Assembly: GCA_965285935.1 (NCBI GenBank)
Contig: OZ260666.1
Span: 37,076,001 to 37,140,000, forward strand
Source: Ophelia neglecta
Taxonomy: Eukaryota
Reading direction: 5' to 3'
Length of the DNA: 64,000 nt
In this document: one piece after another, positions 15,301 to 61,400 of the stretch
How the letters are laid out: the number at the start of each line of letters is the position of its first letter
Numbering within the stretch: position 1 is the stretch's first letter
Notes under the pieces: generated by a model
What the model was told of the DNA's origin: nothing
The model's input: the letters and a program-made list of their open reading frames with translations, nothing else
Databases searched by the model: none
Program-made: the position numbers and the translations under genes

Positions 15301-15518
15301 GCTGGAGTGCCATGTAGAGGCCTATCCTCCTCCTAAGATATCATGGCATGTTAATGGAGTGGAGATCAAGCCATCCACCAAGTACTTCATTGGTCTGGAG
15401 GGCTCTAAGAGTGTGTGTGAGATCCGTAATGTGACCCCTGCAGATATGGGTGTTTACACGTGTAAGGCCTACTCCGACATAGGCGAGGCTGTAACCAGCA
15501 CCACTCTCTATGTCATAG
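15301..15518 (+). CDS. Exon, Ig body
   Basis: LECHVEAYPPPKISWHVNG...ADMGVYTCKAYSDIG; attgcag / G|GTAAGT. Confidence 0.92.
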
Positions 15519-15664
15519 GTAAGTGAGCTCAGTTAGAGAAAGTTGGTCATTTGCATGATAACTGTGAAACTTTAATGTAAAATCATATTTTGCTCATGAA
15601 GTGACATTTCAATTTGAATCCTAAAAACCAGGATTATTGAATGAATCTGATTTAATTCTTTTAG

Positions 15665-16381
15665 TGCCTGAGGTCCCGTCAGAACCTCCCCAATTTGTGC
15701 AGCAACTGAAGAATGTGACAGCTCAAGATGGCAAAGAGGTTGTGCTCACCTGTGTGGTGAAGGGAACACCCATGCCGGAGGTACAGTGGTACCACAACCA
15801 CAGAAACATTGACAAGAGTGAGGACTTTGTCATCAACTATGACCGCAAGACTGGCAAGATTGACCTGGTCATTGTGGACTGTCTGCCTGATGACCATGGC
15901 AGGTTTAAATGTGTGGCCAGCAACCGTTCAGGGCAGGCTATCACAGAGTGTGTCCTTACCGTCCAGACTAAAACAGAGAAAGTCATCGAGGAGAAACATG
16001 AGGTGAGAAAGGAGTCGGTTGAGTCTGTTCACAGCAAGTCCAGCTCGGACACGGAGACCAAGCTGGTCAAGAAGGTGGTAAAGAGGGTGAGCGGTCAGCC
16101 GCCCCGGTTCACCAAGCCCATCCAGCCCTGTGTGGTCAAGGAGGGAGAGTCCTGCCAGTTCCATGCCATCTGCACTGGAGCACCCACACCTGAAATCAGC
16201 TGGCTGAAAGACAAGGTGGAGTACAAGCCGGAGGGCCGTCACGTTCCCGGCTTCAACCCGGAGACCGGGGAGTGTACACTTCTCATCAACAACGCCCGAC
16301 CTGAAGACGTGGGAGTCTACTCCTGCCGGGCCGGCAACGTCGCCGGACGAGCCACCTGCACAGCTAACGTGGTCGTAGTCC
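15665..16381 (+). CDS. Cassette exon A: Ig - short (~45 aa) spacer - Ig, phase 1-1, 717 nt
   Basis: ORF 15637..16512; ttttag / C|GTAAGT. Confidence 0.93.
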
Positions 16382-17348
16382 GTAAGTACCAGACTGCTTT
16401 GTTGCCTGTCTATGTGACTTATCTATTTCTTATATTTGATTTCCAACAATTCCCACTATTTATAAATCAAATACAAATGAATGGTATGAAAACCTTTCTC
16501 TTGAATCAATAATTCAAAACATGTTTATCAATTTGTCTTTTTATACCCTTTTCTGCATGTCTGCTGCAACCTCCCTTGTCTTTCACCCTCTACTTTTTGC
16601 ACCTTGTGTTAATGTGTTGTCTCTTTATGTTTGTGTTTGTATGTGTTGTGTTTTATTCTCAGGTATGGCATAGATATATACCAGTTTATGGCTTTTTGTA
16701 TACACTATTGTAGGGAAGTTTATTTCTTAATTTGAACTCGAAAGCTTTGTTGATATAGTTTCAGAAGTGCAGATTATTTTCATCATGATTTATAAATAAT
16801 TTATCAGTATTCTTGCACTAAATATTGTTGCTGGTAGAAAGTGTGCCTTTTTAAAATAAATAACTCCTAGATGAAGTAGTATTATCAGTATAGTGTAGTA
16901 TGCAGAATGGTCAGACAGTAGTTAATGGTATGGAATAGAACCTAGTCATATCTATATCTGCAGGGTACAGCTAGTGGCTTATTGTACATGTACAATGGTA
17001 CAATGATATATGTGTTATTTTCATTGTAGCTACACATTATATCATATTACATTATTGTAATAACTCGACACAGCCTCATAGGATAGGGTTTAACCTGTGA
17101 AGTAAGGGATGAGGCATTTACATAGTGACTCTGAACTGGAATGCTGTACCAATACTGCATTGTAGTTGTTTGTTTTATTGGATAGACTCATGTTGTATAG
17201 CAGCTACAGTGAGCCTTTGATGCAAGATAATCACACCATTCTTGAAGATGAGATTAGGTTTTCTAGGACTGCTTGGCTGTACATTGGGCTTGCCCTAGTG
17301 CCTGTTCACAAAAGAGACAATTGATGTCTTTTATAATTTTGACTACAG

Positions 17349-19946
17349 AGGCAGACCAGTGCATGGGCGGTTTGGACATGGCAGCTGACTACAATGCCCC
17401 TGTCTTTAGCCTTCCTCTCACACCTAGTCATGTGTTTGATGGAGATGAAGCTTTATTGAGATGCAAACTAACAGGTTTTCCACACCCTGATGTTTTGTGG
17501 TACCACAATGACATAATTGTAGGTGACAGAGATGGGTTTGTTATCAAACATGACAGAGAAACGGGCATTTGTGAACTGATCATACTAGAAGTTTTTCCAG
17601 AAGATCAAGGATATTTTAAATGTGTTGCTTCCAATCCTGCTGGAACAGCCATATCAAGTGCTAAGTTAGTTGTTTGTGGATTTGCAAGCACAAGTGAATT
17701 TGAGTCCTCTGAAACCTCCGAGCTGGAGATGCAAATACAGCCACCAAGGCAGCCACCTCCCTCTCCATCGGAGGAGTACATTGTACCATCTGTCAGGGAA
17801 AATAAATTCCATGATTCTTTGATAGAAAGGACTGATGAAACTTGTGTGGTTGTAGAGGACAACTTCAAAATGGACCAAACATATTACAGTGTCAAGGAAG
17901 CTTGTATGGAAGATGAGAATAGCCAAGAAGACCTGACTAGACAACAGTATCTTATTCAACTACCGTTAGTGAAAGAGGTGGAAGTGACTGAGCTAACAAC
18001 TACCACTGAGGAAACATTCCAAACAACGAGGACAATAAGAGAAACAATGGAAGTGATTAAAGAAAGCCACCCTCAAATGGGTAGGAAACAAATAATAGAT
18101 CAGGCTGCTTCTGTATGTAACAAAGAAACTCAAACAGAGGCTACTAGTGATGTACAAATTGAGAATAAGGTTGTTGAAGAAGAAACAATACGGACTCTTG
18201 TAGAAGAGGAAGTCACTCTCCCCTTTAATATGACTGGCCTATGCTTGACAGAGCCAGCAAGTGCTCAGCCGGCTGATGATGTGATGCCATTCGCTCTGAG
18301 AGAGAAGTTGTTTTTGCCTCCAGTTGAAGAGACCTCACATTCTGACGATGAGAGAGCAAGAGACAATGTGTACCCAGTGCTCACCGACTTCGACATGAAA
18401 GAGGTGGCAGTGCCCAAAGAGATTCCCACCGTCATTGCTCTTGGTGAAGAAAACATGGTTGGATCTATTATGCCTGCATGTACCATGGAGATGCCAGTAG
18501 TAAAGACCTCACAGTATACAACTGTAGTTAAACAAAACAGTATGAATCAACATTCACAGCAACGTGCCATTATTGTGCAGGCAAATCCACAGCTTGTTTT
18601 TCAGGCAGAGGAGAATGTCCAGGAAATTGTTGCTGAGACTGATGCCGAAAATACACTTGATGGCACCGAAATTCAAGAACTGAATGAGGCAAATGCTGTT
18701 ACATTTCTTGTCCAGATGCATACCTCTGAATTGAAATTAGATATACCTGCAGAACAAGTGCAGCAACTGCCTTCAGAGGTCCCAATAAATGTGCCTCTGT
18801 ATATAGAGAGTGTCATATTTGCGATAGAAGAGCATCCCTATTTGACTACTTTGGGTGTGTGTGAGCCTTTTATTGAAATGAACAAAGGGAAGCGCAATGT
18901 ACCTGAGGCCTGTATTTCACATACTATTGAAAAAGTGCAGCTTGTAGAAGACAGTGATATGCTGGACTATAGAGCAAGAGTTAAGATAACCCCTGTCACA
19001 GTGTCTTCAGTCCATCAAGTAGTAGGCAAACCAACAGTTACTGTCATTGGTACTTCAGAACACATACCAGTAAAGACAAGTATGTGTCCTCTTCAACAGC
19101 TACATACTAAAACTACTACAACATTCTCTGAGAAAACAGACGAAGATGCTAAAACAAAAGGCTGCAGTGAAACCAGTCCTGAAACTGTAAATGAAGAAAG
19201 TCCCCTTTCCAGACCTTTAGAAGCAGATATGACAGTAGAAGACCATCCAACTGTGGAGCATATTAAACCCACAGTAAGGGACCAGATTGAGCACCAAAGG
19301 GAAACTGAGGTAGTTCATATAAAGCCTGATGAAATCTACCAGCCACCTGAGATTAAGCTACATATATCTCCAAATCACCCAGAACCATTTGTCTTAGCTG
19401 TTTGTGAACCAAAGGTCATCAATCATAAGTTATTATTGATAGCTGATGAGGTGAACCTGGGGGATAAAATAGAGGATTCTACTATTGTGATGTTTCCTGA
19501 GCATCCACTAGAACCAAACAGGCTCTCTAGCGTCAGTGTACCTACTGAACCAAACACAGAACAGTTCATTACCTCTGCTGTAGAACATGCAGAAGACAAT
19601 GACAGGAACATTCCAGCTCCTTGTGGAGGGATTGTCTTGGTTGAGACACACGAGGCATTGCTTCCCGCCCGGTTTGAACATCCTATCCAGCCTCTTTTAG
19701 TGTCCGGAGGGGACTCGAGTACTTTCAGTGCTAAGGTGTCTGGCTTCCCCCTGCCCGAAATTAGTTGGTACAGAGATGGAATCCTTCTGACAAATTCAGA
19801 CAGGATCTGGGTACAATTAAATACAGAAAATAATCAGGTTGTCCTCACAATTTTGGATTCTAAGCAAGAGGACTCTGGAAATTACGTGTGTCATGCTTCT
19901 AATGAGGCAGGCACATCTGTGTGCTCTGCCAATCTGGTAGTTGTAA
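17349..19946 (+). CDS. Cassette exon B: Ig - ~660 aa unique E/V/T/P-rich spacer - Ig, phase 1-1, 2598 nt
   Basis: ORF 17273..19975; ctacag / A|GTAAGT. Confidence 0.88.
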
Positions 19947-20732
19947 GTAAGTACACAAGCAAATATTTCAGATAGAATATCATAGGTTATTAGGTGTAAT
20001 GCAAAAAGTTCAATGCCCACCTTCGTATACAATTGGTAATTATTTTTTCATAATCTTACTAGAAAATGTACCAGTAATACAGACGTTAATGGATTTGTCA
20101 TATACTGCTACTGTGCTGTCAACTGTCACTGTACATGTCAGTGTGTCTTGATGTGGTATGTTTGGTATTCTTGTCTGTTGTTTATTTTATTAATTGTTGT
20201 TGTTACTAATATTTTATGACTTGCATTCATGTGTACATGTATATGTTATATGCAATGAATTTGGAGTGACTGCTTTGAATTCATACTACATGTATAATCA
20301 AGCTTTTGTGGGCTTTAGCTGATTCCTTGTCAATAACTTGTCATAGCCACTTGTTACTATACAAACTAGGAAGTATTCCTAGTTAAATGTGTTCTGCAAA
20401 CCAGAAATCACACTTGTGATTAATGATTGCAGTTGGATAAAAGCTAGTGTCCTTTTTTGTGATATTCCACTTGGAATATTGTTCCCACTGTACAGAAGCT
20501 TCAGAACATAGACTGTTGCTGAAGGTTGCCTATTACTGCTGGTTAATTGATGTTGTTAACTAGTTGACTGGATAGATATTCCTACTAGGAATATATGTCA
20601 TAGACAGCAGAAGTAAGATGTCAGTGCTTTTGGCTGTCCATCCCTGTAGTAGAGCATGGACATGGTGACAGTACTGGTATGTGTTCACATGCTGGTGGTA
20701 ACCACATTTTTGTCTATCCCTTGTTTATCTAG

Positions 20733-23700
20733 CCCCTGAAGTACCTGAACCACCTTACTTCATCACTGGGCTCCAGCCAATAACAGCCAAGGATGGTGAT
20801 CAGGTGACACTGAGCTGTCAGGTCATTGGTAGGCCAAAGCCATCGGAGATCACATGGTATCATGGCACTAAGTTATTGGATGATAAGTGTGATTTTATCA
20901 CACATTATGACTCAGAGACTGGTGTTTGCCAACTTATCATTGTTGAGTGCATTACAGAGGACACTGGACTTTTTACATGCAGTGCAAAAAGTACTGCTGG
21001 AGAGGCAGTCACATCTGCTAGACTTGTTGTTCAAGAGGAAAATAGAGGGGAAGAAGATGCCATGGAGAGTGAAGTCACATCAGAAACAAGCACAAAGTAT
21101 ATAGAAACTGTTTCTGTGTATTCAACAAAGAAGGAGCTAGATCGCAAAGAAATACAGGACACAATCCCAAAGCACCATCAGATCATTCAGACAATTGCGT
21201 TAGAACCCCAAACCCCTGAGGTAGAAGTGAGTCCTCCAGACGACCAACAGGTCTGTGTTGATCACAGATACAGAACCACATACAAGGAACATCTAATGGG
21301 AGATGGGGAACTTCCAGGCATTGCTTTTACTGTATCTCTGCCAAAACAGCGTTTGAGAGTGAAACAGAGAGCACAAGAGGCATTGCATTCAGAAACTGAG
21401 ACAGAAACTGACATTGACATTGATGAAATAGAAGATCATGGAACAGCAAATCCTCACTACCAAGAATTCATTATGAGATCACATGAGCCCAAGTCTTGGG
21501 CATTCAAAGCAGAACTACCAAAAGAAAAAGAAGTCACTACCATCATGTACAAGGCCTGCATTTCTGCTGATGTTAAGCCAAGAACATTTTCCATACAAGC
21601 CCCTGATGTCCAAGAACTTAAACTGACAGAGCCAGAGAAACTGGCCGCAACTACAGTTGTTCAAAAACCTAAACAAGTTCTGCTTAAAGAACCTATGCTA
21701 ATAGTCAAAGGAGAAACTAAGGAACCTGAGAGTGTTGTTTTGACAGGAGTTGAAGTTGTCACTGTTAAGTCAGTTATTCCAGAAGCTGAAAAGATAGAGC
21801 TTTACAAAACTGAGCAAAGAGTCTCAGCTTCATCAAAATCTCCCCCAAGAGAAGAAATAAATTTCCAGGAATATTCCCCCAGTGAAATTCCAATCACTGT
21901 AACTGAATCTGAATCAGAAGCTGAGATTTTGGATGGATTGACAAGGAGACACTATTATAGGTCACCAGATAAGTTCACCACCACTTATTATGAGGATATA
22001 GTGTCTGAATCAGAGTTACCAGAAGTGGCTATTACTATACCGATTCCTGATGGATCAGTATCAGATTCTGAACTCTATCCTACAAGAAGACTTTATGTTG
22101 GCAAACATCATATGCAAAGACCCAGAAGTCAGGAAGATTTAGTGACAGAAACTGAAACTGAATCTGAAGTAGAAATATCTGATGAGGTCCTTGCTAAGAA
22201 AGAACACAGACGACATGGGCCTGCGTACCAGGAGAGAATCAGGAGGGAAACTAAACTAAAACCTGTTAATGTGGAAATTGAATACCAGCTGTCAGATGAT
22301 TCTGATGTCGAAAAAGAACCTGAAACAATCTCACATTCTATCAAAATACATAAAACAGTTCAGCCAAAAACAGAAAGTGTCTGTAAAACAGTGATTGTAA
22401 AACATCACAAGCCGCTGGTTAACTTGTATAGAATGACACCATTGGCTAGAACTGATGATGGCCACACACTGCAGCAGAGTGACAGTGGAACTCTACCAAC
22501 CAGAAGTCTCCACCCTGTGACAACAACAGCTGAGGAAATGAAGAGAGAGGATTATACAAAACCAGACAGATCCCGAAGACAGAGGGTGATAATCCAACCA
22601 CCCGAGGAGGATGCTGAATATGAGTCTATCATTTCTGAAACTGTAACAAAGAGCAGCCAACACATGAGTTCCGAGTACACCTCCCAATCTTCTTATAAAG
22701 AAACATTTGAGAAAAGCACAACATATGGCTCTGAAACCCTAGATGTCGGTTCTGATTCAGAGCGCATTCTTACGGACAGAACTCCAACTGTGCCAAAAGA
22801 ACCCAAACCAAAATCAAGACGCTCATATCAAACAGCTATCCAGCCTGAAATTATGCTACATATTCCTGTTGAACATCAGACTAGCATAGCAGGCCGCAGA
22901 GGCCACAGAGGCAGGGGCGAAATTGACAGGAAGGGCTGTCCTAAGACTCCAGAAACATTCAAAGACAGAATGCATTCTAGGGAAGTCATTTCTTCTACCT
23001 TATCAGACTCTGAATATATGCACTTTAAAGAGGAGTATCGCCGGAAAACAGAATTAACTAGATGGTCAGATGATGAAGAGGCAAGGAGAAATGTGCCTGT
23101 TAAACACATTACTTCTACTAAAAGAATAAGACCACACAGCAGTGGGCCCATAGACTCAGTACCAATAAGTGTTACATCAACCCAAAGGACCCAAGCTCCA
23201 GCTGGAACGGGAATGCCACGGTTCACTGTTGAAGTAGCATCAGAGCCATGCAAGGTAGTAACTTGTGTTGAGTCCAAAGAAACCACTTCTGAGAAGAAAG
23301 ATTCAAAGAAGACAACTGAGACAGTAACAACTAGATTGAAAAAGGGGAGAAGTAGAGACACTTCTGTTTTTATTCCTCATAGCGAGGACCGAATGAAACA
23401 TGACAATACTCTGAGCCCTTCTAGTCTGATGCCGCCATCTGATTTACCTGACACTCCTCCATACACACGCAAACACAGAGTAATGGAAATCCCACTGGCA
23501 TTAAGCACACCACTAAGTGATACTGAAAATCAAACTTCAACCCGAACAGATGAGTCCTTATCAAGGATGGACCAAACAACGGAGGTAAAAGATACACCAA
23601 AAGATGTGACTCTTGATGAATCTCAGATGGATGTGGAGAAATCATTGACTGGGGCTGAGTCTAAAGGTCAACAAACACCAGTAGTGCTAACAAAGGAAGG

Positions 23701-24140
23701 CCAGGAGGTGATTAACAGGCATATATTAGAACATGGTGGCTACGCCTCCCAAAATGGAGCAACAATCCTCTGTGACGAGAGCATGCAGATGATGCCGCCT
23801 CATTTTATTGTCCCCATTGAACCACAGATTGTACATGAAGGTCAAACATGTACCTTCACTGGCAGGGTGACAGGTGTACCCATGCCAGAGATACGGTGGT
23901 ATAAGGAACTATCAAGAGCCACTCCCATTAAAAGGGCTAGAACATCCATGGATCAGGATGTGAAAACTCTGGCTTTGGAACTTGCAAAAAGTGCCAGGCT
24001 GACCCAGTCATACAACCGAGAGACTGGCGACATTTCTTTGGTGCTCAGAGACTGCACGGTGGAAGATGGTGGCAATATTTCTTGTGTGGCCACTAACTGT
24101 GTTGGTCGGGCTACTTGTACGGCTAACATGATCGTCGTGC
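20733..24140 (+). CDS. Cassette exon C: Ig - ~900 aa unique S/T/E-rich spacer - Ig, phase 1-1, 3408 nt
   Basis: ORF 20804..24148 extended upstream to PEVPEPPYF; tatctag / C|GTAAGT. Confidence 0.9.
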
Positions 24141-24477
24141 GTAAGTAAATCAATACTTTAAGTTTCACATAGCCCACAAAAGCAATTATCTGCAAAAGGT
24201 CATTTGTTTGACTACTGAGTGTTCTGCTGTTACATTCTGACTAATTTCCTGGTGTGATGAGTAATCTTGTTTACAGCTCTGCATACATTCTTTATTTGTT
24301 GACCTTCCCCCTGTCCCTCAAGTCTGAAATGCAACTTCTTTCCTTGCACATCTTACCAGTAAACCTTTGCTTCCTTATTGTATCTCTACCTTTTCATTCA
24401 TCTGTTCACACAAACAATGGGCTCGCCGACCCCTGTAGGAAATGCTTCTTAACGCTAAATTACTTGATTATTTTCAG

Positions 24478-24637
24478 CTCCCGATGCTGAGGTGACAATC
24501 ACAGAAAAGACTGTCTCAGTGAAGAAGGAGAAGGTGACTGTGATTGGAGAACAAGAGACTCGTGTGGTGGAGAGCTCACCCACGTTTGGCCAAACCTTGC
24601 TGCCTGTAACAGAAGTCCATATTGGAGAAAATGTCAA
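24478..24637 (+). CDS. Exon, linker plus start of Ig
   Basis: PDAEVTITEKTVSVKKEKV...SSPTFGQTLLPVTEVHIGENV; ttttcag / AA|GTGAGT. Confidence 0.87.
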
Positions 24638-26385: not shown

Positions 26386-29300
26386 TCCCATCATCATCAG
26401 AAGATGAAGGAGTAGAGAAAATCACAAGCAGGACTGTTGAGGTTGTCAAGACTACAGTGCCTGTCAAGGTGAAAGAGTCCAGACGATTCTCTGAAACCAT
26501 TGCTATTGACCACAAAGAAAGACTGAAAGAAATGGCTGTCCAGTTCAAAATACCGCAACCAAAGAAGGAAAAATCTGAGCTGTATGTGAGGCAAAAAGCA
26601 GCTCCGAAACCAATGAGAATGGAGGTAGAAGTACCAACAACCAAGGTGACCTCCACAACACTGGCACCTAGATCTTTACAAGTAATGGCTACACCCACCA
26701 AGCGTCAACAGCTGCAGGTGGAGGTCACCGAGAAAAGAAGATTCTCAGAGACTGTAGCTATTGACCATAGAAGATTTGAGCCTGTTGAAATGATGATTGA
26801 TGTCCCCAAACCCAAGGTGATTGAAAAATCATCACTTGTGGTGCAACAAAAGCCGGCACTGAAAGGAGTGAGGATGGAGGTGGAAGTGCCAGAAGTTCTC
26901 AGGCAGACTAGCCACGCCCAGTACATCAAACACAAACAGATTCAGGCAATGGAGACCAAGAGACAAGAGTTTATTATGCAGCTGTCTGGCCAGCCTCCAC
27001 GCTTCATATTTGATCTGCAGTCAAGGAAAGTTATGGATGGAGAGGAAGTTAAATTCAAAGCCCATGTGGTTGGCACTCCGACTCCTGAAATTGCATGGTT
27101 CCACAATGGCAAGAGAATTGTTGATAATCCAGACTTCAGAACCTCATATATCCGTGACACCGGAGAATGTGAACTCCTCATTCTGGAGGTGTTCCCTCAA
27201 GACACTGGTACTTATGAATGTGTTGCAATCAACAAATATGGACGTGCAACATCAACAGCCACCCTTAAAGTGGAGGTTTATGAATATGTCCCAGATAGTG
27301 AAGAAGCCACAGCATCCCAGACTGAATCAGTCATCTCTACATCTAGCATGGATGAAGTTGAGTTCCAGAAAAAGACCCAGAAATTCCTTGAGAAGATGCA
27401 GGAATTGCGCAAGGAAGTGCACGATGAGGAGACTACTGTTAAAACAACATATGAGGAAGAAATAGTCGAAGAATTGGATATTGAAGAACAGGGTTATGAG
27501 GAAACTATTCTTATGGCAGATGTCAAGTGGCAGATACCTAAGCATGTTGAGCCTCACACTGAAAGGATCAGTCCTGAGAAAACAGAGGAATTCATGCAGA
27601 CAGTTCCTGTTGAACAGCCCAAGCAGGCTGAGGTTGGTCCTGAAACTACTCAAGCCAAGGTTACACCCAGAAGACTTAGCCATGTCAAACCACTGGAAGG
27701 TCCCAGGGGTGAAACTGCCTCAGAAGATATCATTGCTTCTGGAGCTCAGTTCACTGAACAGACAGACACACAAGTTGAACTAGCACATCACTCTGTGGCT
27801 GCCAGGAGACACAGCCATGTGGAACCAGTTGTTGACACCCAAGCACCTCAAGACACCGAGGAATTTGCTGGTGTTCCAATGCAGGTCACAAAACACAAGG
27901 AGCACCTTGTGGAATATGAAGAATCTACTGTTGCACCAAAACAACCAACCAGAGCACAACCTGTTGTTGAAAAACAAACAGTGGAGTCTGCTGAAAATCT
28001 CATTGGAGAAGCATCCGAGGCCACACAAGAGGAAGAGTACAGCATTGAACTTGCCAAGCCAGCAGCAGTGGCCCCTAAACAGCCAACTAGAACCCAACCA
28101 GTTGAAGAGAAGCAGTCTGTTGAATCTGCTGAAAATCTTATTGGTGAGGCATCAGAAGCTATGCAGGAAGAGGAATACAAGATAGATCTTGCTCATCCTG
28201 CGGCAGTGGCTCCTCAACAGCCAACAAGAACCCAACCAATTGAAGGTAAGTGTGCGGAGGAGTCTGCAGAAAGCCTCGTTGGAGAAACCTCTGAAGCTAT
28301 GCAGGAAGCGGAATACAGGACAGAACTTGTTCAGCCAGCTGCTGTAGCTCCTAAACAGACGACAAGAACCCAACCTGTAGAAGAAAAACAGGCTGTGGAA
28401 ACTGCTGAAAACCTTATTGGGGAAGCATCAGAGGCCATGCAGGAAGATGAATACCATGTTGACTTGACTCAACACACAGGCATCGCTCCTCAGCAGCCTA
28501 CACGAATTCAACCAGTGCAGGAGCAACAAACTGTAGAATCAGCTGAAAACCTCATCGATGAAGCACCAGAAGCAATGCAGGAGAAGGAACACAAGGTTGA
28601 CCTAGCCGAACCTACCAAAGGTGCTGCCAAGCAGCCTACCAGAATTCAGCCAATTGAAGAAAAGCAGACGGTTGAATCTGCTGAAAGCCTTATTGGAGAA
28701 GCCTCTGAAGCTATGCAAGAGGAGGAATATAAAGTGGATCTTTCCCATCCAGCAGCCATTACTCCCAAACAGCCAACAAGAGCACAACCTGTTGAAGAGA
28801 AACAGGCAGAGGAATCTGCTGAAACTCTAATTGGTGAAGCATCTGAGGCTATGCAAGAAGAAGAATATCATGTGGAATTGGCTACACCATCCACAGTCAC
28901 TCCAAAACAACCAACCAGAACCCAACCAGTAGAAGAACAACAGTCAGTTGAATCTGCTGAAAATCTCATTGGCGAAGCATCTGAAGCTATGCAAGAAGAG
29001 GAATATAAAGTAGACCTTTCTCAACCAGCTGAAATTGCTCCCAAACAGCCAACAAGGACTGAACAAGTTAAAGAGCAGCAGGCAGAAGAATCTGCTGAAA
29101 ATCTCATTGGCGAAGCATCTGAAGCTATGCAAGAAGAGGAATATAAGGTAGACCTTTCTCAACCAGCTGAAATTGCTCCCAAGCAGCCAACGAGAACACA
29201 ACCAATAGAAGAGCAACAGGCTATTGAGTCTGCAGAAAATCTCATTGGTGAAGCATCAGAAGCCATGCAGGAGGGAGAATACACTGTCGACATGGCCACA

Positions 29301-32300
29301 CCTACAACAGGTGCTCCCAAGCAACCTACCAGGATTCAGCCAATTGAAGAACAGCAAGCAGTCGAATCTGCTGAAAATCTCATTGGTGAAGCATCAGAAG
29401 CCATGCAGGAGGGAGAATACACTGTCGACATGGCCACACCTACAACAGGTGCTCCCAAGCAACCTACCAGGATTCAGCCAATTGAAGAACAGCAAGCAGT
29501 TGAATCTGCTGAAAATCTCATTGGTGAAGCATCAGAAGCCATGCAGGAGGGAGAATACACTGTCGACATGGCCACACCTACAACAGGTGCTCCCAAGCAA
29601 CCTACCAGGATTCAGCCAATTGAAGAACAGCAGGCAGTTGAATCTGCTGAAAATCTCATTGGTGAAGCATCAGAAGCCATGCAGGAGGGAGAATATACCG
29701 TTGACATGGCCACACCTACAACAGGTACTCCCAAGCAACCTACCAGGATTCAGCCAATTGAAGAGCAGCAAGCAGTTGAATCTGCTGAAAATCTCATTGG
29801 TGAAGCATCAGAAGCCATGCAGGAGGGAGAATATACCGTTGACATGGCCACACCTACAACAGGTACTCCCAAGCAACCTACCAGGATTCAGCCAATTGAA
29901 GAGCAGCAAGCAGTTGAATCTGCTGAAAATCTCATTGGTGAAGAATCAGAAGCCATGAAAGAGGAAGAATGTAAGGTGGATCTTGCTCAACCAGCTGAAG
30001 TTGCTCCTAAACAGCCAACAAGAACAGAACAACTTGAAGAAAAGCAGACAGAAGAATCTGCCGAAACTCTCATTGGTGAAGCATCTGAGGCCATGCAAGA
30101 AGAGGAATATCTTGTAGAAATGGCCGAACCTGCCGCTGTGGGCCCGAAACAACCTTCTCAAACACACCCTGTAGAAGAACAACAGGTTGTAGAATCTGCT
30201 GAGACATTAGTTGGAGAAACGACTGACACTATGCAAGAGGAAGAGATCAAGGTTGAACTAGCTAAACATGGATTTGGTCCAAAGCAGACTACTAGAACAC
30301 AACCAGTAGAAGAACAACATGAAGTGGAATCTGCAGAAACCCTTGTTGGGGAAGCAACAGATACCATGCAGGAGGAGGAATATACAGTAGACCTTGCAAA
30401 CCCTGCTGTTGTTGGTCCCAAACAGGCCACCAGAGCTCAGCCAGTAGAAGAAGAGCAAAATGTAGAATTGGCAGAGAACCTGGTTGGTGAAACTACTGAA
30501 GCCATGGAAGAAAAAGAGTATACCGTGGAAATGTCTCAACATGATGCCAAGACCAAAGCTGAAACCAGAATTGAACCCGTTGTTGAAAAACATCCAGAAG
30601 AAAGTACTCTAGAGGGTGGTGAGGAAATCATCACAGAGACTCCCCAAGGAGTGGAAATTCCTTCAGAGATGGATATTCAATCAGGTGTCCAGGAGAAACT
30701 TGAGTCGTTAGTGCAGCCAACCCATGAGCAACAACCTGAAGAACTGACTGAAGAGGTTAGAGGAAAATCACCAGAATTCACTAAGGAGGAAGAAATAGCT
30801 GTTGAGCTTTCTAAGCATGTTGTAGAGGAAAAGAGGGAAACTCTTGTCCAAATGACAATGGAACAACACTCAGAAGAACTCACAGAAGAGGTTGGCGAAG
30901 TTCCATCAGAACAGCCACAGGAGGAAGAGATAACAGTAGCATTAGCCAAACATGATGTTACTAGTGCCAAGGAGTCCCTTGTTGGACAACAGCTTGAACA
31001 ACTCGCTGAAGAAATAGCTGAAGGCATCATCCATGAGCTCACCTCCCAGTCCCAACCTGGCGAAGACATTAAGCTTCAACTTGACAGACCAGAGGTCAAG
31101 CAACCAGAAGGAGCACTAGCTGCTACACAGGTTGCTCAACTAACAGAAGAAAATATTTCAGAGATCTTGGAACATATGCCATCTCCTGATGTGACAGAAG
31201 GCCAGGAGGTGTTGATGGAATATGGTACCCAAGAGCATCAGCCCAAGCCTGAGACTAGGGCTCCAGAACTTGAAGAGCAAATGTCTGAAGGTTCTATTGA
31301 GGAGAATCTACAAGAAATCCCAACTGAAACAAGTGAGAGTCAGGAAGTGATTGTGGAACTGGCTAAATCTGAAGCACCTGTGAAAGAAACCAGCATGACT
31401 GGCATCGTTGAAGAGACTCACTCCGTGGAGGAAGAAGAGGAAATATTTTATGAGACACCAGAACCTAGTGTTCCTGGTCAGGATGTTGTGGTTGAGCTTT
31501 CTGCCGCAGAACTGAAGCAACGGGAACAAACACTTGTTGGCACTCAAGAAGCAAAAGCTGAAATTGAGATGGCTGACGAAGGAACAATGGAATTCACCAC
31601 TGAGGTGACAAAGGAGGAGGAAATCCAGGTAATTCTGGGTAAAGCTGAGAAGGAATCTCAGAAACCTTCTTTAGTAAGCATGCAGGAGACTGTGGCTGAG
31701 CCTTTACAGACAAAGGAGCTCGTCACCGATGATGTAACAGAAGACATATCCCAAGAATCAAAGGTTGAAGTACCACTGGACACTGCCGCGTCCCAGGCTG
31801 CTAAGCCTTCTCTTGTAGGAACGCAAGAAGAACAGCTAGCACTACAAGAAACAAGAGAGGATATTGGTGAACTGACTGAAGACGTTACGGTACCAGATGA
31901 AATCAAGGCTGACTTCAAGGCAGCCGAAACTGGAGAGAGACCCCATACCCTTGTATCTGAGGTTGCTGAGGCTGTTCCTCCCGAGAAAATTGCGGAGGAA
32001 ATCATAGGTAACATCAAGGAGGTGTATATGATACCATCAGAAGTAAGACCAGAATTTGAACCGTCCGTAGTAGAGAGATATCGTCTCGAAACCCGCATTA
32101 GAGCACAGGAGGGCGTTAGGAACCTGGAGATGGCCGAAATGAGCCAGGTGGATTTCCAGGCTGCTACTGCTCAACAGTCGCAGATGCTGGTTGAACTGTC
32201 TCAAGCTGAGCAAACCGAAGCTGAGGTAAGATCAGTACAGGAAGTGACAGAAGAGAGACAGGTGTTGACTGAAATGTCACAAGAAGAAGTTGAATTCATC

Positions 32301-32643
32301 GAAAAATATGCCACTGAGACGGTCCATGTTACAGAGAAGACTTCGAGAGAAATCAAGGAGTACATGTCCCCAGTGTTTGAGACCCCTCTCTCTGATATCA
32401 CTATAACAGATGGAGAGATGGCAGTTCTGGAGTGCCGTGTGGCTGGAGTACCCCAGCCCAATGTCACATGGTTTGTCTCCGGACAGGAGATCAAGCCTTC
32501 CCCAGACTTCAAGATTACATACGAGGATGGTATCTGCACCCTAGTTATATATGATGTACTTCCAGAGGATGAGGGAGAATATGCCGTCAAGGCTGTGAGT
32601 GAGGCTGGTACATGTGTCACCACTGCCTACCTGACTGTGCTAC
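26386..32643 (+). CDS. Giant exon (6258 nt, phase 1-1): EVPK-rich segment - Ig - 46-aa acidic repeat array - Ig
   Basis: ORF 26379..32699; ttgccag / C|GTAAGA. Confidence 0.93.
27930..30545 (+). repeat. Coding tandem array, 138-bp/46-aa unit, 19 clear copies (EEQQAVESAENLIGEASEAMQEGEYTVDMATPTTGAPKQPTRIQPI)
   Basis: E(N/S/T)L(I/V)GE-type motif at 27993, 28131, ... 30201 every 138 nt, then 30336 and 30474. Confidence 0.95.
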
Positions 32644-51517: not shown

Positions 51518-52465
51518 GTATTAATGAAACACTAGGATGTCTGAGGCATGTTTGCACGACTATCAGTTCATATGAAGCAGATTTTTATTTCATGTATTCT
51601 TATTTTACATTTGTATCAGAACATATATTTTCGTTATATTTATTTTCCTTTTTAATCATTTATTCATTTGTTTCAGGTGGAACTTGGCTGAATGCTTTTA
51701 TTTTTCAATTTATGACATTGTAGATGTTCAATGTTTCTGAATGGCTATATTATTTATTTATTTATACATTTTCAGTTTTAAGTTCACATGCGGGTACATT
51801 TGGTTTGCTCAAGGTTGCACCTTAGACATTTATCAAATTTTGTTCTTTTTTGGACAATTATACCTAAGCCTTAATTATATTCAAATGCTTTATGATTCTA
51901 AATAAGCTTTGGCGTTTCTTTCGAAATAGGTGCAATCTTTGGAACCATTGATATTCTTTGCATATTTTAAATTTCAGCTTTTATTTCTACTATGAATCAT
52001 ATTATTTCATTATTACATTATTTCCTTTTCTGAATTCCTGTTTTTCTTACAATGGCAGCTTCCAGTGATTATTTCTACGTTTACTTTTGTACGTTTCTTT
52101 TTTGTCTTGATTGTTACAATTTACTCTAATGTGAGTTCCTTGATATATTTTGGTTAGTTCTATATACTTTTACATATATGATGAAGTGTGTGTTTTTACT
52201 GTATCCTATTTCTTTTTTTTATTGCCCAGGTTTCAGAGACTAAGAATATTTTTGTTCTTGTTTCTTCTTTTTGTAAAAATGTTCTAAATCTTCTTATAAT
52301 TCTCAATAATTAATATTACTTTTTGCACACTCCCTTCAGTGTAGCACACAATGTACAAACTATCTTTTCCAAATATCTATCACAATGTGATAATAATTTG
52401 AAACATATCATTAATGCCGTATCAGTGTTCCTATTGTTTTATAATAGAATCGTTTCCTATTTCAG

Positions 52466-55400
52466 ATGGCCAGTACGAAACTACTAAAAATGTGGTTACA
52501 ACTGTCGCTGAAACAGTTGTTCGACCGAGGGAGGTCAGAATGGAAGTGTCTACTGCCATTGTTGGACAGCGTAGAGCTTCAAGGGTCAGCCTGCATGAAG
52601 AACAGGTTCGTCCTGAAGTTATCACATCAGGAATCGGTCCACTGGAGGTTAAAACAGACATTGCAAGGATGGAGGACTTTGAAGGAGAAGAAGTAGGGGT
52701 AGCTGATGTCAGAGATCGAAGTGGGTTCCTAGTCTTGGAACAAGCGACCACTGCACAACTTGAGACAATAACTGGTGAGCTTCTGATGGCGTCTGTTGAG
52801 AAGGCCTCAAAAGAAGATATCCCAGCCTCCATGGTTTCTGCTACCAAGGAGGTGCCAAAGCCCCAACGAGTACAGATGCAACGGGCTGAATTGCAGATTG
52901 ACAGTTGTGTTGAAGGCATTGATACCGCCCCGTCTGAGATAGTATCCCCAGAAGATGTTGCATTTGATGCTGAGAAAGCATCTGTTAAAGCTCCGAAACC
53001 AACGCGAGCCCATATTCAAGTAGAAAAGGTTATGCCCGACACCTTTGCCGAGGGTGTTGACAAAGCTAAGGAAGAAATGCTTGTACCTGAAGATATACAC
53101 TTCCGAGCTGAGCAAGCTGCTGTAAAGATCCCAAAGCAACCAACAAGAACTGTTGTCCAAGCCACCGAATTGAAACCGGAACAACTCCAAGAGGGCATAC
53201 AAGTGCCAACCGAACTGATGGCAACAGAATCAGTGGAAATGGTTGACAAAGCGACTGCTGAAAAAACAGCAAAATTGCCTTCCCAGATAAAAGAGCAAGC
53301 AACTGCCTTAAACCTAGAAACTGTCCATGGCAAACTCATTTCAAAGGAAGGAGAAAATATCCAACCTATTGAAATAACTGTTGACATTGGTACTGCTGAA
53401 GTAACAAGTCGAAAGGAAACACAAGTTACTGCTCAAGCAGAAAGAGAACCTAGTCCAGAAGAAGTTAGACAGGAACCTTTAGCTCCAAGTGGCGAATCCG
53501 TCACCCCTGCTGATATTGGAGAAGTTGAAATGGGTTCAGCAGATCTACAGCTCCCTCAACCCGCCCAAGTAGGAATACAGCAAGCAGAGGTACAACCAGA
53601 ATCCATTCAAGATGAGCTTGTTATTCAGACGGGAGAATCTATTGAGCCTACTGAAATTACAGTGGATGTTGGCAAAGCTCAAATCAAAGGTAAAAAGCCA
53701 ACAAGAGTCACAACACAAACTGAAGGACAGCTGCCAACCGAGAAATTGTCCGAAAGACTTGAGACGCAGAAAAGTGAGAATATTCTACCAGTTATCACAC
53801 CAGTGACCGATATGGAAAAGGTGCAGATTGCTGCCAGAGAAACCGTTCTCACAATGCTTCAGCAAGGGAAATTTCTTCCAGAAGAGTTAACAGAGGGTAT
53901 ACTACAACAAACTGGAGTGTCAATTAGTCCCCAGGAAATAGGACAGTTCTTGTTAGAGACAGCTAGTATTCAAGCCCGACATGAAGTCTTAATTGCACTG
54001 CAATCGGGACAACACTCGCCTGAAATGGTGGCTGAAGGTCTCATGTCACCTCAACCCGGGCAGGTCATTGAGCCAGAGGAAATTGTGCAGGCAATTATGA
54101 AGGCCACTATGCATGCCCAGCAACAAGTACAAGTAGCTCTTCAGCAAGGTCAAATGGTGCAAGAGCAAATATATGAAGGGATACAACCGGAGACAGGCCA
54201 CATTGTTGAGCCAACTGAGATACAATATCAGATTCAACAGGCGCAGGTTACTGGTAAAAAGACCACTCAAGTGAAGATTCAGCAGTCGCAGATTACACCA
54301 GAAGTTTTCTCTGAAGGGATAGAGATTCAAACGGGTAAAAAGGTGGAGCCAACCGAAATCACTGTCCAAATTGGCCAGGCTGAGGTAACACAGCAAGCAC
54401 CTTCCCAGGTGGTTCCACAGGCCACAGAGTCGAAACCTGAAACTGTGATTCATGAAGTTATTAAGCAAGTTGGTGAGACAATAACCCCATCGGAGACAAT
54501 GCTGACCGAAGTTGTCCACGTAGAAACCAAAAAACCCACAGAGACCCAAGTGGTAATCCAAAAGACTGAAATACAGCCAGAGACATTTTCTGAAGGGTTG
54601 GAAATACAACTTGGCCAAACTCTCCTTCCCAAGGAAATTCAGCTACAGATTGGACAAGCTGAAGTTCAAATGCAGAAGGAAACGAAAGTTGCACTGCAAA
54701 CCACAGAAACAAAACCTGAAACTGTAGCCCATGAGATAATTATTCAGCCAGGACAAACATTAACTCCAATGATCACTCCTGTCACTGAGCTGGAGAAAGC
54801 ACAAATCACAGCTAGAGAAACTGCACTGGCATTGATTCACCAGGGTAAATTCCTCCCAGAAGAGATAACAGAAGGAATTTTGCAACAGACTGGAATCTCA
54901 GTGAAACCGCAAGAAATAGGTCATTTCTTGATGGAGACCGCCAGTATTCAAGCTCGACATGAGGTATATGTCGCCTTAGTGTCTGGCCAGCGCACCCCAG
55001 AGATGGTCTCAGAGGGAATCCTTTCCCCAAAACTTGGCAAACCTATCCAGCCGAAAGAAATTGTTGAAGCGATCATGAAAGCGACAATATTAGCCAAGGA
55101 GCAGGTGCAAGTTGCCCTGCAGCAAGGACATTTGGTACAGGAACAGGTCACCGAAGGAATTCAAATGGCACCCAGCTACACTGTTCAGCCCAGTGAAATA
55201 GAATTGCAGATCCAAAAGGCACATGTCTCTGGGAAGGTCTCAACTGAAGTCATCCCTCAACTAGCTGAAATGAGATCTGAACTTCTAACAGAAGGCATTC
55301 ACATACAGGAAGGCCAGTCAATAGAGCCAGCTGAAATCACCGTTCAGATTGGCCAAGCAGATGTAACTTCACCTCAGCAAACCCAAGTGGCAGAGCAGAA

Positions 55401-58400
55401 GACTAGAATGATCCATGAAATTGTTACTGAGGAAGTGGTCATCCAAGCAGGAGAAAGCATCAAATCTCAAGAGATCACAATGCAGGTTGTAGAAGCTGAT
55501 GTCACCACACCTCAGGAGGCCCAGGTAGCAGAACAGAAGGAAAGGATCAGCCCTGAGACCGTCATGGAGGAGGTAGTAATACAGACTGGGGAGACTATTG
55601 AACCTCACGAAATTGAGTTCCAGGTATCAGAGGCCCAGGTAGAGGAGAAAATGACCACCCAAGTCATCACACAACAGGTGGAGCCAAGAAGGGAATCAGT
55701 CACTCAAGAAATTTTCCTTCAGATAGGTGAGACAGTTAAACCAGAAGAAACCATTACGGAAATTTCTCAGGCTTCATTTGATGTTAAACCCGAGACACAG
55801 ATTTTAGAACAGGTAACTGAAGTCGCGCCTGAAACTGTGACCCAGGAACTAGTCATCCAGACAGGAGAATCTATTAAACCTGAGGAGATCCAGTTTGATA
55901 TTTCCCAAGCTTCACTTGAAATGAAGCCAGAAACCCAGATCTCAGAACAGATAACAGAACTGAAACCAGAAACTGTTTCGCAAGAATTAGTTATCCAAGT
56001 GGGAGAAACAGTTAAGCCTAAAGAAATCCAGTTTGAGGTTGCTGAGGCTGGCATTGAGCTTAAGCCTGAAACCCAAACTGCCATCCAAGAGGCAGAAATG
56101 CAACCAGAAACTGTAACTGAAGAGGTGATCATCCAAACTGGCGAAAGCGTCCAACCTCAAGAGATCACAATGCAGGTTGTAGAAGCTGATGTCACCACAC
56201 CTCAGGAGGCCCAGGTAGCAGAACAGAAGGAAAGGATCAGTCCTGAGACCGTCACGGAGCAGGTAGTAATACAGACTGGGGAGACTATTGAACCTCACGA
56301 AATTGAGTTCCAAGTATCAGAGGCCCAGGTAGAGGAGAAAATGACCACCCAAGTCATCACACAACAGGTGGAGCCGAGGAGGGAATCAGTCACTCAAGAA
56401 ATTTTCCTTCAGATAGGTGAGACAGTTAAACCAGAAGAAACCATTACGGAAATTTCTCAGGCTTCATTTGATGTTAAACCCGAGACACAAATTTTAGAAC
56501 AGGTAACTGAAGTCGCGCCTGAAACTGTGACCCAGGAAATAGTCATCCAGACAGGAGAATCTATTAAACCTGAGGAGATCCAGTTTGATATTTCCCAAGC
56601 TTCACTTGAAATGAAGCCAGAAACCCAGATCTCAGAACAGATAACAGAACTGAAACCAGAAACTGTTTCGCAAGAATTAGTTATCCAAGTGGGAGAAACA
56701 GTTAAGCCTAAAGAAATCCAGTTTGAGGTTGCTGAGGCTGGCATTGAGCTTAAGCCTGAAACCCAAACTACCATCCAAGAGGCAGAAATGCAACCAGAAA
56801 CTGTAACTGAAGAGGTGATCATCCAAACTGGCGAAAGCGTCCAACCTCAAGAGATCACAATGCAGGTTGTAGAAGCTGATGTCACCACACCTCAGGAGGC
56901 CCAAGTAGAAGAACAGAAGGAAAGGATCAGTCCTGAGACCGTCACGGAGGAGGTTGTAATACAGACTGGGGAGACTATTGAACCTCACGAAATTGAGTTC
57001 CAGGTATCAGAGGCCCAGGTAGAGGAGAAAATGACCACCCAAGTCATCACACAACAGGTGGAGCCGAGGAGGGAATCAGTCACTCAAGAAATTTTCCTTC
57101 AGATAGGTGAGACAGTTAAACCAGAAGAAACAATTACGGAAATTTCTCAGGCTTCATTTGATGTTAAACCCGAGACACAAATTTTAGAACAGGTAACTGA
57201 AGTCGCGCCTGAAACTGTGACCCAGGAAATAGTCATCCAGACAGGAGAATCTATTAAACCTGAGGAGATCCAGTTTGATATTTCCCAAGCTTCACTTGAA
57301 ATGAAGCCAGAAACCCAGATCTCACAACAGATAACAGAACTGAAACCAGAAACTGTTTCGCAAGAATTAGTTATCCAAGTGGGAGAAACAGTTAAGCCTG
57401 AAGAAATCCAGTTTGAGGTTGCTGAGGCTGGCATTGAGCTTAAGCCTGAAACCCAAACTACCATCCAAGAGGCAGAAATGCAACCAGAAACTGTAACTGA
57501 AGAGGTGATCATCCAAACTGGCGAAAGCGTCCAACCTCAAGAGATCACAATGCAGGTTGTAGAAGCTGATGTCACCACACCTCAGGAGGCCCAAGTAGAA
57601 GAACAGAAGGAAAGGATCAGTCCTGAGACCGTCACGGAGGAGGTAGTAATACAGACTGGGGAGACTATTGAACCTCAAGAAATTGAGTTCCAGGTATCAG
57701 AGGCCCAGGTAGAGGAGAAAATGACCACCCAAGTCATCACACAACAGGTGGAGCCGAGAAGGGAATCAATCACTCAAGAAATTGTGCTTCAAACAGGTGA
57801 GAAGGTAGAACCAGAGGAAACAGTTTTTGAAATATCTACGGCTTCAATTGACGTTAAACCTGAGACTCAAATTTTAGAACAGGTAACTGAAGTCGCGCCT
57901 GAAACTGTGACGCAGGAAATAGTCATCCAGACAGGAGAATCTATTAAACCTGAGGAGATCCAGTTTGATATTTCCCAAGCTTCAGTAGAAATAAAAACAG
58001 AAACTCAGATCTCTGAACAGATAACTGAACTGAAACCAGAAACTGTTTCGCAAGAATTAGTTATCCAAGTGGGAGAAACAGTTAAGCCTGAAGAAATCCA
58101 GTTTGAGGTTGCTGAGGCTGGCATTGAGCTTAAGCCTGAAACCCAAACTACCATCCAAGAGGCAGAAATGCAACCAGAAACTGTAACTGAAGAGGTGATC
58201 ATCCAAACTGGCGAAAGCGTCCAACCTCAAGAGATCACAAAGCAGGTTGTAGAAGCTGATGTCACCACACCTCAGGAGGCCCAGGTAGCAGAACAGAAGG
58301 AAAGGATCAGTCCTGAGACCGTCACGGAGGAGGTTGTAATACAGACTGGGGAGACTATTGAACCTCAAGAAATTGAGTTCCAGGTATCAGAGGCCCAGGT

Positions 58401-61400
58401 AGAGGAGAAAATGACCACGCAAGTCATCACACAACAGGTGGAGCCGAGGAGGGAATCAGTCACTCAAGAAATTTTCCTTCAGATAGGTGAGACAGTTAAA
58501 CCAGAAGAAACAATTACAGAAATTGCTCAGGCTTCATTTGATGTTAAGCCCGAGACTCAAATTTTAGAACAGGTAACTGAAGTCACGCCTGAAACTGTGA
58601 CCCAGGAAATAGTCATCCAGACAGGAGAATCTATTAAACCTGAGGAAATCCAGTTAGATATTTCCCAAGCTTCACTTGAAATGAAGCCAGAAACCCAGAT
58701 CTCAGAACAGATAGCAGAACTAAAACCTGAAACAGTTTCCCAAGAACTGATAATCCAAGTGGGAGAAACAGTTAAGCCTGAAGAAATCCAGTTTGAGGTT
58801 GCTGAGGCTGGCATTGAGCTTAAGCCTGAAACCCAAACTACCATCCAAGAGGCAGAAATGCAACCAGAAACTGTAACTGAAGAGGTGATCATCCAAACTG
58901 GCGAAAGCGTCCAACCTCAAGAGATCACAATGCAGGTTGTAGAAGCTGATGTCACCACACCTCAGGAGGCCCAGGTAGCAGAACAGAAGGAAAGGATCAG
59001 CCCTGAGACCGTCACGGAGGAGGTTGTGATCCCGTCTGGGGAGACTATTGAACCTCAAGAAATTGAGTTCCAGGTATCAGAGGCCCAGGTAGAGGAGAAA
59101 ATGACCACCGAAGTCATCACACAACAGGTGGAGCCGAGAAGGGAATCAGTCACTCAAGAAATTGTGCTTCAAACAGGTGAGAAGGTAGAACCAGAGGAAA
59201 CAGTTTTTGAAATATCTACGGCTTCAATTGACGTTAAACCCGAGACTCAAATTTTAGAACAGGTAACTGAAGTCGCGCCTGAAACTGTGACCCAGGAAAT
59301 AGTCATCCAGACAGGAGAATCTATTAAACCTGAGGAAATCCAGTTAGATATTTCCCAAGCTTCACTTGAAATGAAGCCAGAAACCCAGATCTCAGAACAG
59401 ATAGCAGAACTAAAACCTGAAACAGTTTCCCAAGAACTGGTAATCCAAGTGGGAGAAACAGTTAAGCCTGAAGAAATCCAGTTTGAGGTTGCTGAGGCTG
59501 GCATTGAGCTTAAGCCTGAAACCCAAACTACCATCCAAGAGGCAGAAATGCAACCAGAAACTGTAACTGAAGAGGTGATCATCCAAACTGGCGAAAGCGT
59601 CCAACCTCAAGAGATCACAATGCAGGTTGTAGAAGCTGATGTCACCACACCTCAGGAGGCCCAGGTAGCAGAACAGAAGGAAAGGATCAGTCCTGAGACC
59701 GTCACGGAGGAGGTTGTAATACAGACTGGGGAGACTATTGAACCTCAAGAAATTGAGTTCCAGGTATCAGAGGCCCAGGTAGAGGAGAAAATGACCACGC
59801 AAGTCATCACACAACAGGTGGAGCCGAGGAGGGAATCAGTCACTCAAGAAATTTTCCTTCAGATAGGTGAGACAGTTAAACCAGAAGAAACAATTACAGA
59901 AATTGCTCAGGCTTCATTTGATGTTAAGCCCGAGACTCAAATTTTAGAACAGGTAACTGAAGTCGCGCCTGAAACTGTGACCCAGGAAATAGTCATCCAG
60001 ACAGGAGAATCTATTAAACCTGAGGAAATCCAGTTAGATATTTCCCAAGCTTCACTTGAAATGAAGCCAGAAACCCAGATCTCAGAACAGATAGCAGAAC
60101 TAAAACCTGAAACAGTTTCTCAAGAACTGGAAATCCAAGTGGGAGAAACAGTTAAGCCTGAAGAAATCCAGTTTAAAATTGCTGAGGCTGGCATTGAGCT
60201 TAAGCCTGAAACCCAAACTACCATCCAAGAGGCAGAAATGCAACCAGAAACTGTAACTGAAGAGGTGATCATCCAAACTGGCGAAAGCGTCCAACCTCAA
60301 GAGATCACAATGCAGGTTGTAGAAGCTGATGTCACCACACCTCAGGAGGCCCAGGTAGCAGAACAGAAGGAAAGGATCAGCCCTGAGACCGTCACGGAGG
60401 AGGTTGTGATCCCGTCTGGGGAGACTATTGAACCTCAAGAAATTGAGTTCCAGGTATCAGAGGCCCAGGTAGAGGGGAAAATGACCACCGAAGTCATCAC
60501 ACAACAGGTGGAGCCGAGAAGGGAATCAGTCACTCAAGAAATTGTGCTTCAAACAGGTGAGAAGGTAGAACCAGAGGAAACAGTTTTTGAAATATCTACG
60601 GCTTCAATTGACGTTAAACCCGAGACTCAAATTTTAGAACAGGTAACTGAAGTCGCGCCTGAAACTGTGACGCAGGAAATAGTCATCCAGACAGATGAAT
60701 CTATTAAACCTGAGGAGATCCAGTTTGATATTTCCCAAGCTTCAGTTGAATTAAAACCAGAAACTCAGATCTCTGAACAGATAACAGAACTAAAACCAGA
60801 AACTGTTTCACAAGAATTAGTTATCCAAGTGGGAGAAACAGTTAAGCCTGAAGAAATCCAGTTTGAGGTTGCTGAGGCTGGCATTGAGCTTAAGCCTGAA
60901 ACCCAAACTACCATCCAAGAGGCAGAAATGCAACCAGAAACTGTAACTGAAGAAGTGATCATCCAAACTGGCGAAAGCGTCCAACCTCAAGAGATCACAA
61001 TGCAGGTTGTAGAAGCTGATGTCACCACACCTCAGGAGGCCCAGGTAGCAGAACAGAAGGAAAGGATCAGTCCTGAGACCGTCACGGAGGAGGTTGTAAT
61101 ACAGACTGGGGAGACTATTGAACCTCAAGAAATTGAGTTCCAGGTATCAGAGGCCCAGGTAGAGGAGAAAATGACCACGCAAGTCATCACACAACAGGTG
61201 GAGCCGAGGAGGGAATCAGTCACTCAAGAAATTTTCCTTCAGATAGGTGAGACAGTTAAACCAAAAGAAACAATTACAGAAATTGCTCAGGCTTCATTTC
61301 ATGTAAAGCCCGAGACTCAAATTTTAGAACAGGTAACTGAAGTCGCGCCTGAAACTGTGACCCAAGAAATAGTTATTGAGACAGGAGAATCTATCAAACC

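Follow-up and report, generated by a model that had tools for sequence, protein, structure and literature searches.

Tandem Ig-linker-Ig exons of unequal linker length in a titin-like gene of Ophelia neglecta: three paralogues, two of them candidate optional spring cassettes

The stiffness of vertebrate titin is tuned by inclusion or skipping of exons that encode disordered sequence between immunoglobulin (Ig) domains. The N2B exon of titin (exon 49) is one long I-band exon in which Igs surround a unique disordered sequence, and it is included or skipped as a whole according to tissue. Mutually exclusive exon clusters, for example in Dscam, consist of tandem paralogues of the same phase and normally of near-equal length, with a defined exclusion mechanism. 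To our knowledge, the tuning of passive elasticity in invertebrate muscles, be they catch, obliquely striated or cross-striated, is poorly known. Across vertebrates the N2B exon measures 2.5–3.8 kb; novex-1 and novex-2 (exons 45 and 46; 375 and ~573 nucleotides (nt)) are adjacent in-frame optional exons just upstream of an exon of ~6 kb and are not strictly exclusive (PMC5852582). In kettin/sallimus of insects and nematodes, which belongs to the invertebrate titin family, Igs are separated by spacers of ~40 amino acids (aa) (PMC3207145). Here we analyze a 64,000-nt stretch of the Ophelia neglecta genome (assembly GCA_965285935.1, contig OZ260666.1, positions 37,076,001 to 37,140,000; hereafter the window), in which a titin-like gene carries three consecutive exons, A, B and C, that share one Ig-linker-Ig design but differ greatly in linker length.

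Each of the three exons begins and ends with a Pfam I-set domain, the limits of which we set with an Ig profile built from these domains (Table 1). A reading of the window from its letters alone, referred to here as the sequence-only reading, had placed the exon borders, lengths, phase 1-1 and GTAAGT donors, and all of these are exact. Read in phase 1, that is two bases in, the frames are uninterrupted for 238 (A), 865 (B) and 1135 (C) codons. By our own estimate a stop is expected by chance in ~1 codon in 17 at ~43% G+C, and frames as long as these do not stay open by accident. Directly upstream of every exon lies a pyrimidine-rich tract with AG at its end, directly downstream the donor GTAAGT, and all sites are GT-AG and U2-type. 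Exons A and C open with the motif PEVP(S)EPP.F, and C[TS]AN..VV closes all three, with a single further base up to the donor; in the whole window, C[TS]AN..V occurs at these three exon ends only. The last Ig of C (C2) additionally contains an insertion of ~30 aa (23909-24001) after the conserved Trp strand (LSRATPIKRAR...), which AlphaFold2 models as a loose loop between strands. This position is common to all C orthologues, in which the insertion has 20–30 aa, while its sequence differs except in the closest species. The linkers have a high content of E, T, S, V, P and K and do not match one another significantly (best BLASTP E 0.01), and their lengths between the limits given by the Ig hidden Markov model come close to the ~45, 660 and 900 aa at which they had been put when described as unrelated. 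Any combination of A, B and C keeps the frame and, by reading, no stop arises at any junction codon. The donor of the exon ending at 15518 is frame-compatible with A, B, C or the exon starting at 24478, and the acceptor at 24478 likewise with A, B, C or the donor at 15518.

We compared the locus with genomic contigs from eight other species (L001 to L009) and with the gene lists of three further contigs; sequence searches were run one exon at a time. Maximum-likelihood trees were built from 39 and 71 Ig domains and included orthologues of as many as eight further species. The 39-domain tree unites the first Igs of A, B and C in one clade (support 95/90) and their last Igs in a second (90/96), with grouping by exon across species. 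The 71-domain tree returns the same last-Ig clade (98/95) and first-Ig clade (80/80), as well as groups for the first and last Ig of A (A1 99/95, A2 94/94) and for C2 (99/94). Clustering of the Igs by position had been set beforehand as a test, and it is what we find; the proposed origin by tandem exon duplication is borne out by the same clades. On the evidence of these trees A, B and C are paralogues, derived from one Ig-linker-Ig unit that was tandemly triplicated before the sampled species diverged. The exon-wise Ig groups across species imply that the triplication is old.

Table 1. Positions in the window of exons A, B and C, their introns, the neighboring exons and the giant exon G.
Feature	Positions	Strand	Length (nt)	Phase	Content
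Upstream exon	15301..15518	+		ends in phase 1	second half of an Ig; 84% aa identity to L001
Exon A	15665..16381	+	717	1-1	Ig A1 15676-15966; 41-aa basic/Ser-rich linker ending KKVVKRVSGQPPRF; Ig A2 16090-16380
A-B intron	16382..17348	+	967		
Exon B	17349..19946	+	2598	1-1	Ig B1 17387-17677; 659-aa acidic E/V/T/P-rich spacer; Ig B2 19655-19945
B-C intron	19947..20732	+	786		
Exon C	20733..24140	+	3408	1-1	Ig C1 20741-21034; 917-aa E/T/S/K-rich spacer; Ig C2 23786-24139
Downstream exon	24478..24637	+		starts in phase 1	first half of next Ig; 85% aa identity to L001
Exon G	26386..32643	+	6258	1-1	no stop, GTAAGA donor; 200-aa lead, Ig G1, 1694-aa E-rich spacer, Ig G2

Among the described systems, vertebrate N2B appears to be the closest functional analogue. 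Like N2B, exons B and C are single exons of similar size in which I-set Igs flank a long unique sequence. Unlike N2B, which is a single exon, A, B and C are three paralogues, and they belong to an invertebrate gene known from genomic sequence. Neither the C spacer in an exhaustive search nor the B spacer in a length-limited search showed homology to the unique sequence of vertebrate N2B; the likeness would be one of design, not descent, as far as seen. The location of A, B and C upstream of the giant exon G resembles that of novex-1 and novex-2 before their ~6-kb exon. However, the three exons are longer (717–3408 nt vs 375 and ~573 nt), and G is open and ends in a donor, whereas novex-3 has a stop codon. 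Exon A resembles kettin only in its layout of Igs with a linker of ~40 aa. Its linker ranges from ~40 to 140 aa among orthologues and lacks the kettin spacer motifs, both of which (as given in PMC3207145) are absent from every forward-strand frame of the window. The motif that closes the A linker, KK.VKR.SGQPPRF, is basic and conserved, even as far as leech. Overall, the locus can be regarded as a probable variant of the modular titin spring element, built on paralogous Ig-linker-Ig exons.

L001, L006, L007 and, by its gene list, the P0167 contig have A, B and C followed by two split Igs and then a giant exon. The L005 contig begins at B and then follows the conserved order, and L004 has a B-like exon, in which the last Ig was not found, followed by C. 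Identity to L001 is 76–93% for the flanking Ig exons, ~75–79% for A, 44–50% for C and 32% for B over the aligned part. Orthologues of exon A were found on >50 contigs with 44–91% identity, every one of them with CTAN.VVV|GT at its end, and A is present in every species examined. The donor after the last Ig falls at the identical codon position in every orthologue. Orthologous exon lengths are multiples of three in well-covered assemblies; deviations are confined to long-read contigs of 3x and 4x coverage, in which indel errors are evident. Searching exon C against 1.84 billion representative proteins yielded one match across the whole spacer (P0001, 37% identity over the spacer) and several open frames of 650–870 aa with the Ig-spacer-Ig layout; in this exhaustive search the C spacer had no relatives beyond close kin. 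For exon B, compared with proteins of similar length, the single orthologue was that of L001, with 32% identity in the spacer, and the other hits were generic Ig matches, e.g., to fish palladins.

Exons B and C vary several-fold in length between species, and one or both are absent from at least two related lineages. In L008 (8834-13710), A is followed within 1.4 kb by the downstream exons and there is no B or C. L009 (9998-16811) lacks C and has, besides A, a single B-like exon whose spacer measures 139 aa. This B-like exon is without the C2-type insertion, and its nearest tree rows are B domains, a placement that is unsupported. In L007 the C exon lacks the first Ig. The A domains of L008 nest within the A clades, amid species with all three exons, which argues for later loss of B and C, with basal attraction of the long B and C branches as a possible cause of the same pattern. 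Two gene structures lie further afield. In L002 (1977-3107), a contig from a more distant species, a single open frame spans the upstream exon and A, and the intron between them is absent. We rejected this join as a transcript, as it is a genomic contig in which that intron was lost. The gene model of a hypothetical Helobdella robusta protein of 306 aa (P0118) directly joins an upstream-type Ig, an A2-type Ig and a G1-type Ig and is without an A1-, B- or C-like part; its A2-type Ig is 66% identical to a mollusc-side A2.

The sequence-only reading had proposed that A, B and C are mutually exclusive, i.e., that a transcript contains one of them and that muscles would differ in spring length and binding surface according to the exon chosen. 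Tandem paralogues of identical phase with homologous ends are indeed the usual origin of such exons, and in vertebrate titin the novex exons 45, 46 and 48 have been so described, although even novex-1 and novex-2 are co-expressed in chicken and frog (PMC5852582). As in Dscam-type clusters, A, B and C are tandem homologues of the same phase that are interchangeable in frame, and the phase is conserved in orthologues. In contrast to such clusters, their lengths are five-fold apart, their spacers are not homologous and an exclusion mechanism was not found. None of the arrangements that would bar joint inclusion is seen: the introns measure 967 and 786 nt, all sites are U2-type and all exon lengths are multiples of three. 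An inverted-repeat scan of 15400-24600 for docking/selector pairing returned chance-like pairs only, with no site pairing with several others, although weak or gapped pairings could escape such a scan. Moreover, A is much more conserved than B and C and is the sole one of the three found in all species, so it is not an equal alternative to them. The choice between A, B and C is thus not supported, and we consider strict exclusion very improbable.

Exon A and exon B evolve under different constraint. Measured against the close relative L003 (synonymous divergence dS about 0.7–1.0), the ratio of nonsynonymous to synonymous substitution rates (dN/dS) is 0.077 for A vs 0.30 for the first 92 codons of B, which thus changes about four times faster. 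The exons also differ in codon usage. The G+C content at third codon positions (GC3) is 0.69 in A and 0.56–0.75 in the upstream exons vs 0.36 in B and 0.35 in C, confirming the impression by eye that B and C use more A/T-ending codons than A and its flanks; the introns have a G+C content of 0.30–0.38. This drop includes the Ig parts (B1 0.27 and C1 0.37 vs A1 0.61 and A2 0.74) and recurs in L003 and L006. Translation passes through every codon of an mRNA with equal frequency, and a GC3 drop that is confined to certain exons hints at exons that are translated less. We take it as only a hint that B and C are translated less often. As a general property of B and C the codon-bias drop was rejected, because it is lineage-specific. 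The suggestion that B and C belong to minor isoforms is supported in so far as weaker codon bias and faster evolution of B are expected of less-used exons, but its codon argument does not extend to all lineages.

Conservation also extends into the intron between A and B. When the window is aligned with L003, the first 60 nt after the A donor (16382-16441) and the last 134 nt before the B acceptor (17215-17348) are 71–78% identical, compared with 69% of third codon positions in A and 59% in B. The middle of this intron cannot be aligned, and the intron before A aligns in its last 13 nt only. The comparison covers a small sample that was chosen by the alignment itself. Conserved intron flanks are common beside regulated exons.

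The fast evolution of B might alternatively mark a relic in decay that enters transcripts seldom or never and is open only through recent relaxation; the same might apply to C. The terminal branches of the window domains B1 (1.1–1.25) and B2 (0.9–1.1) are very long compared with 0.02–0.03 for B1 of L001, the GC3 of B equals the G+C content of introns, and B was lost in L008, all of which would fit a relic. However, a stop-free frame of 865 codons at 43% G+C is not expected by chance, the dN/dS of 0.30 indicates purifying selection, intact splice sites and the hallmark residues of the Igs have been preserved, and the flank of the B acceptor is conserved. Decay of B thus seems quite unlikely to us.

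The shared phase 1-1, the weak codon bias, the relaxed constraint on B, the several-fold length variation and the lineage losses favor a reading in which A is a conserved core module and B and C are fast-evolving, optional spring or scaffold cassettes that are not mutually exclusive. We give this reading about an even chance. We further infer that in this lineage the most abundant isoforms would lack B and C. A single Ig-linker-Ig exon gave rise to the three, with the Ig ends kept and the linkers free to lengthen and change. Exon A retained a short, conserved and basic linker, while the linkers of B and C grew long, acidic and rapidly changing. Between their folded Ig anchors, B and C may act as entropic-spring and docking segments in the way of the unique sequence of vertebrate N2B. 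With phase 1-1 throughout, neighbors included, each exon could be included or skipped independently and the frame would stay intact. More tentatively, muscles might differ in the combination they use (A, A+B, A+C or A+B+C), which would set spring length and docking motifs. This would be an N2B/novex-like arrangement independent of vertebrates, with the number of cassettes adjusted by lineage.

Several observations weigh against optional use of B and C. All exon A relatives (54 of 54) run into the intron after ...VVV (VVVR[K/E]) and are hence genomic sequences, not transcripts; among the long proteins of the best 150 representatives there is no true A orthologue, so no annotated isoform can be read. 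The differences in copy number speak for evolutionary dispensability, not for alternative splicing within one animal. The donors are perfect GTAAGT sequences and the acceptors have fair pyrimidine tracts, which makes them strong sites as in constitutive exons. In L001 and L005 the GC3 drop is weak or absent, and low GC3 is found in other giant exons too, where it may mean fast-evolving disordered sequence and not low inclusion. Finally, a single-sequence AlphaFold2 model of B is uninformative, with low confidence even for the Igs, and for disorder in B composition alone speaks.

The strong canonical splice sites at all three exons, their open and in-phase state in several species and the distribution of low GC3 would also be expected if A, B and C were constitutive. 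They would then be spliced in series, forming three fixed Ig-spacer-Ig units in an extensible region, and the codon bias and evolutionary rate would reflect weakly constrained disorder. We regard this as possible but doubtful, because low GC3 reaches the Ig domains of B and C, because L008 has neither exon and L009 has no C, and because the intron flanks at the A donor and the B acceptor are conserved.

Whether optional or constitutive, C has a spacer that looks spring-like by prediction. An AlphaFold2 model of C, based on a five-species alignment, gave predicted local distance difference test (pLDDT) values of 76–91 for the Igs and <50 for residues 105–1017, which contain almost no secondary structure. 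Only two short helices of low confidence were modeled, at 483–505. The C spacer is therefore predicted to be disordered and spring-like, and this part of the switchable molecular spring put forward in the sequence-only reading stands; the switching between A, B and C is not supported. Although it changes fast otherwise, the C spacer holds short motif islands that are conserved across five species. An acidic Ser/Thr run, SQEDL.TETETESE, with GP.YQE.I.RETK ~25 aa behind it, occurs twice (21368-21493 and 22118-22288), and traces of this TETETE...YQE.I.R motif are found in all five aligned species. The repeated motif may be a docking or phosphorylation site. In the two closest species, a stretch with a PPxY core, SPSSLMPPSDLPDTPPYTRK (23414-23473), is conserved as well: it is nearly identical in the window and L001, although the surrounding spacer is only ~40% identical. 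A further conserved segment of the C spacer adjoins C2 (23678-23734). In B, a motif directly after B1 is common to the window and the L001 orthologue. Pfam searches of the spacers and of the other giant exons returned Ig domains only, plus sub-threshold or repeat-driven noise.

Exon G follows the same Ig-spacer-Ig design as A, B and C, and 21% of its spacer is Glu. In one of the trees its first Ig, G1, falls close to the first-Ig clade, a weakly supported placement. A single Pfam hit to OPA3 in G was without a significant stretch and was rejected. The lead of G (26386-26984) consists of two copies of ~85 aa, each with RRFSET.AIDH and ending in ...RMEVEVP. The G orthologue in L001 is only ~3.6 kb long compared with 6258 nt in the window, which suggests that the G spacer, too, changes fast in length.

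In total, the forward strand of the window encodes ~20 I-set Igs, many of them split across two exons, and several giant open exons come after. Titin tandem Ig segments are the top matches among solved structures, and the locus is single-copy in the genome. Based on the Ig content and these structural matches to titin Ig tandems, we refer to the host gene of this lophotrochozoan as a putative giant titin/connectin-like muscle gene, of which the window would cover an I-band-like part. Near the end of the window, one open frame of >3866 codons (52402-63999) reaches the window border and has a period of ~690 nt that is seen even among minus-strand open reading frames. Upstream of the first Ig exons, a proline-rich open frame of 145 aa with PxxP-type runs (1571-2005, +) has no Pfam match.

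The locus provides a clear and datable case of the origin of a spring segment, copies of which were later lost in some lineages. If B and C are used in a tissue-specific manner, it would be a convergent counterpart of the vertebrate N2B and novex exons and a tractable one, with three cassettes. If the exons are constitutive, it would still illustrate well how fast disordered linkers evolve within a conserved frame.

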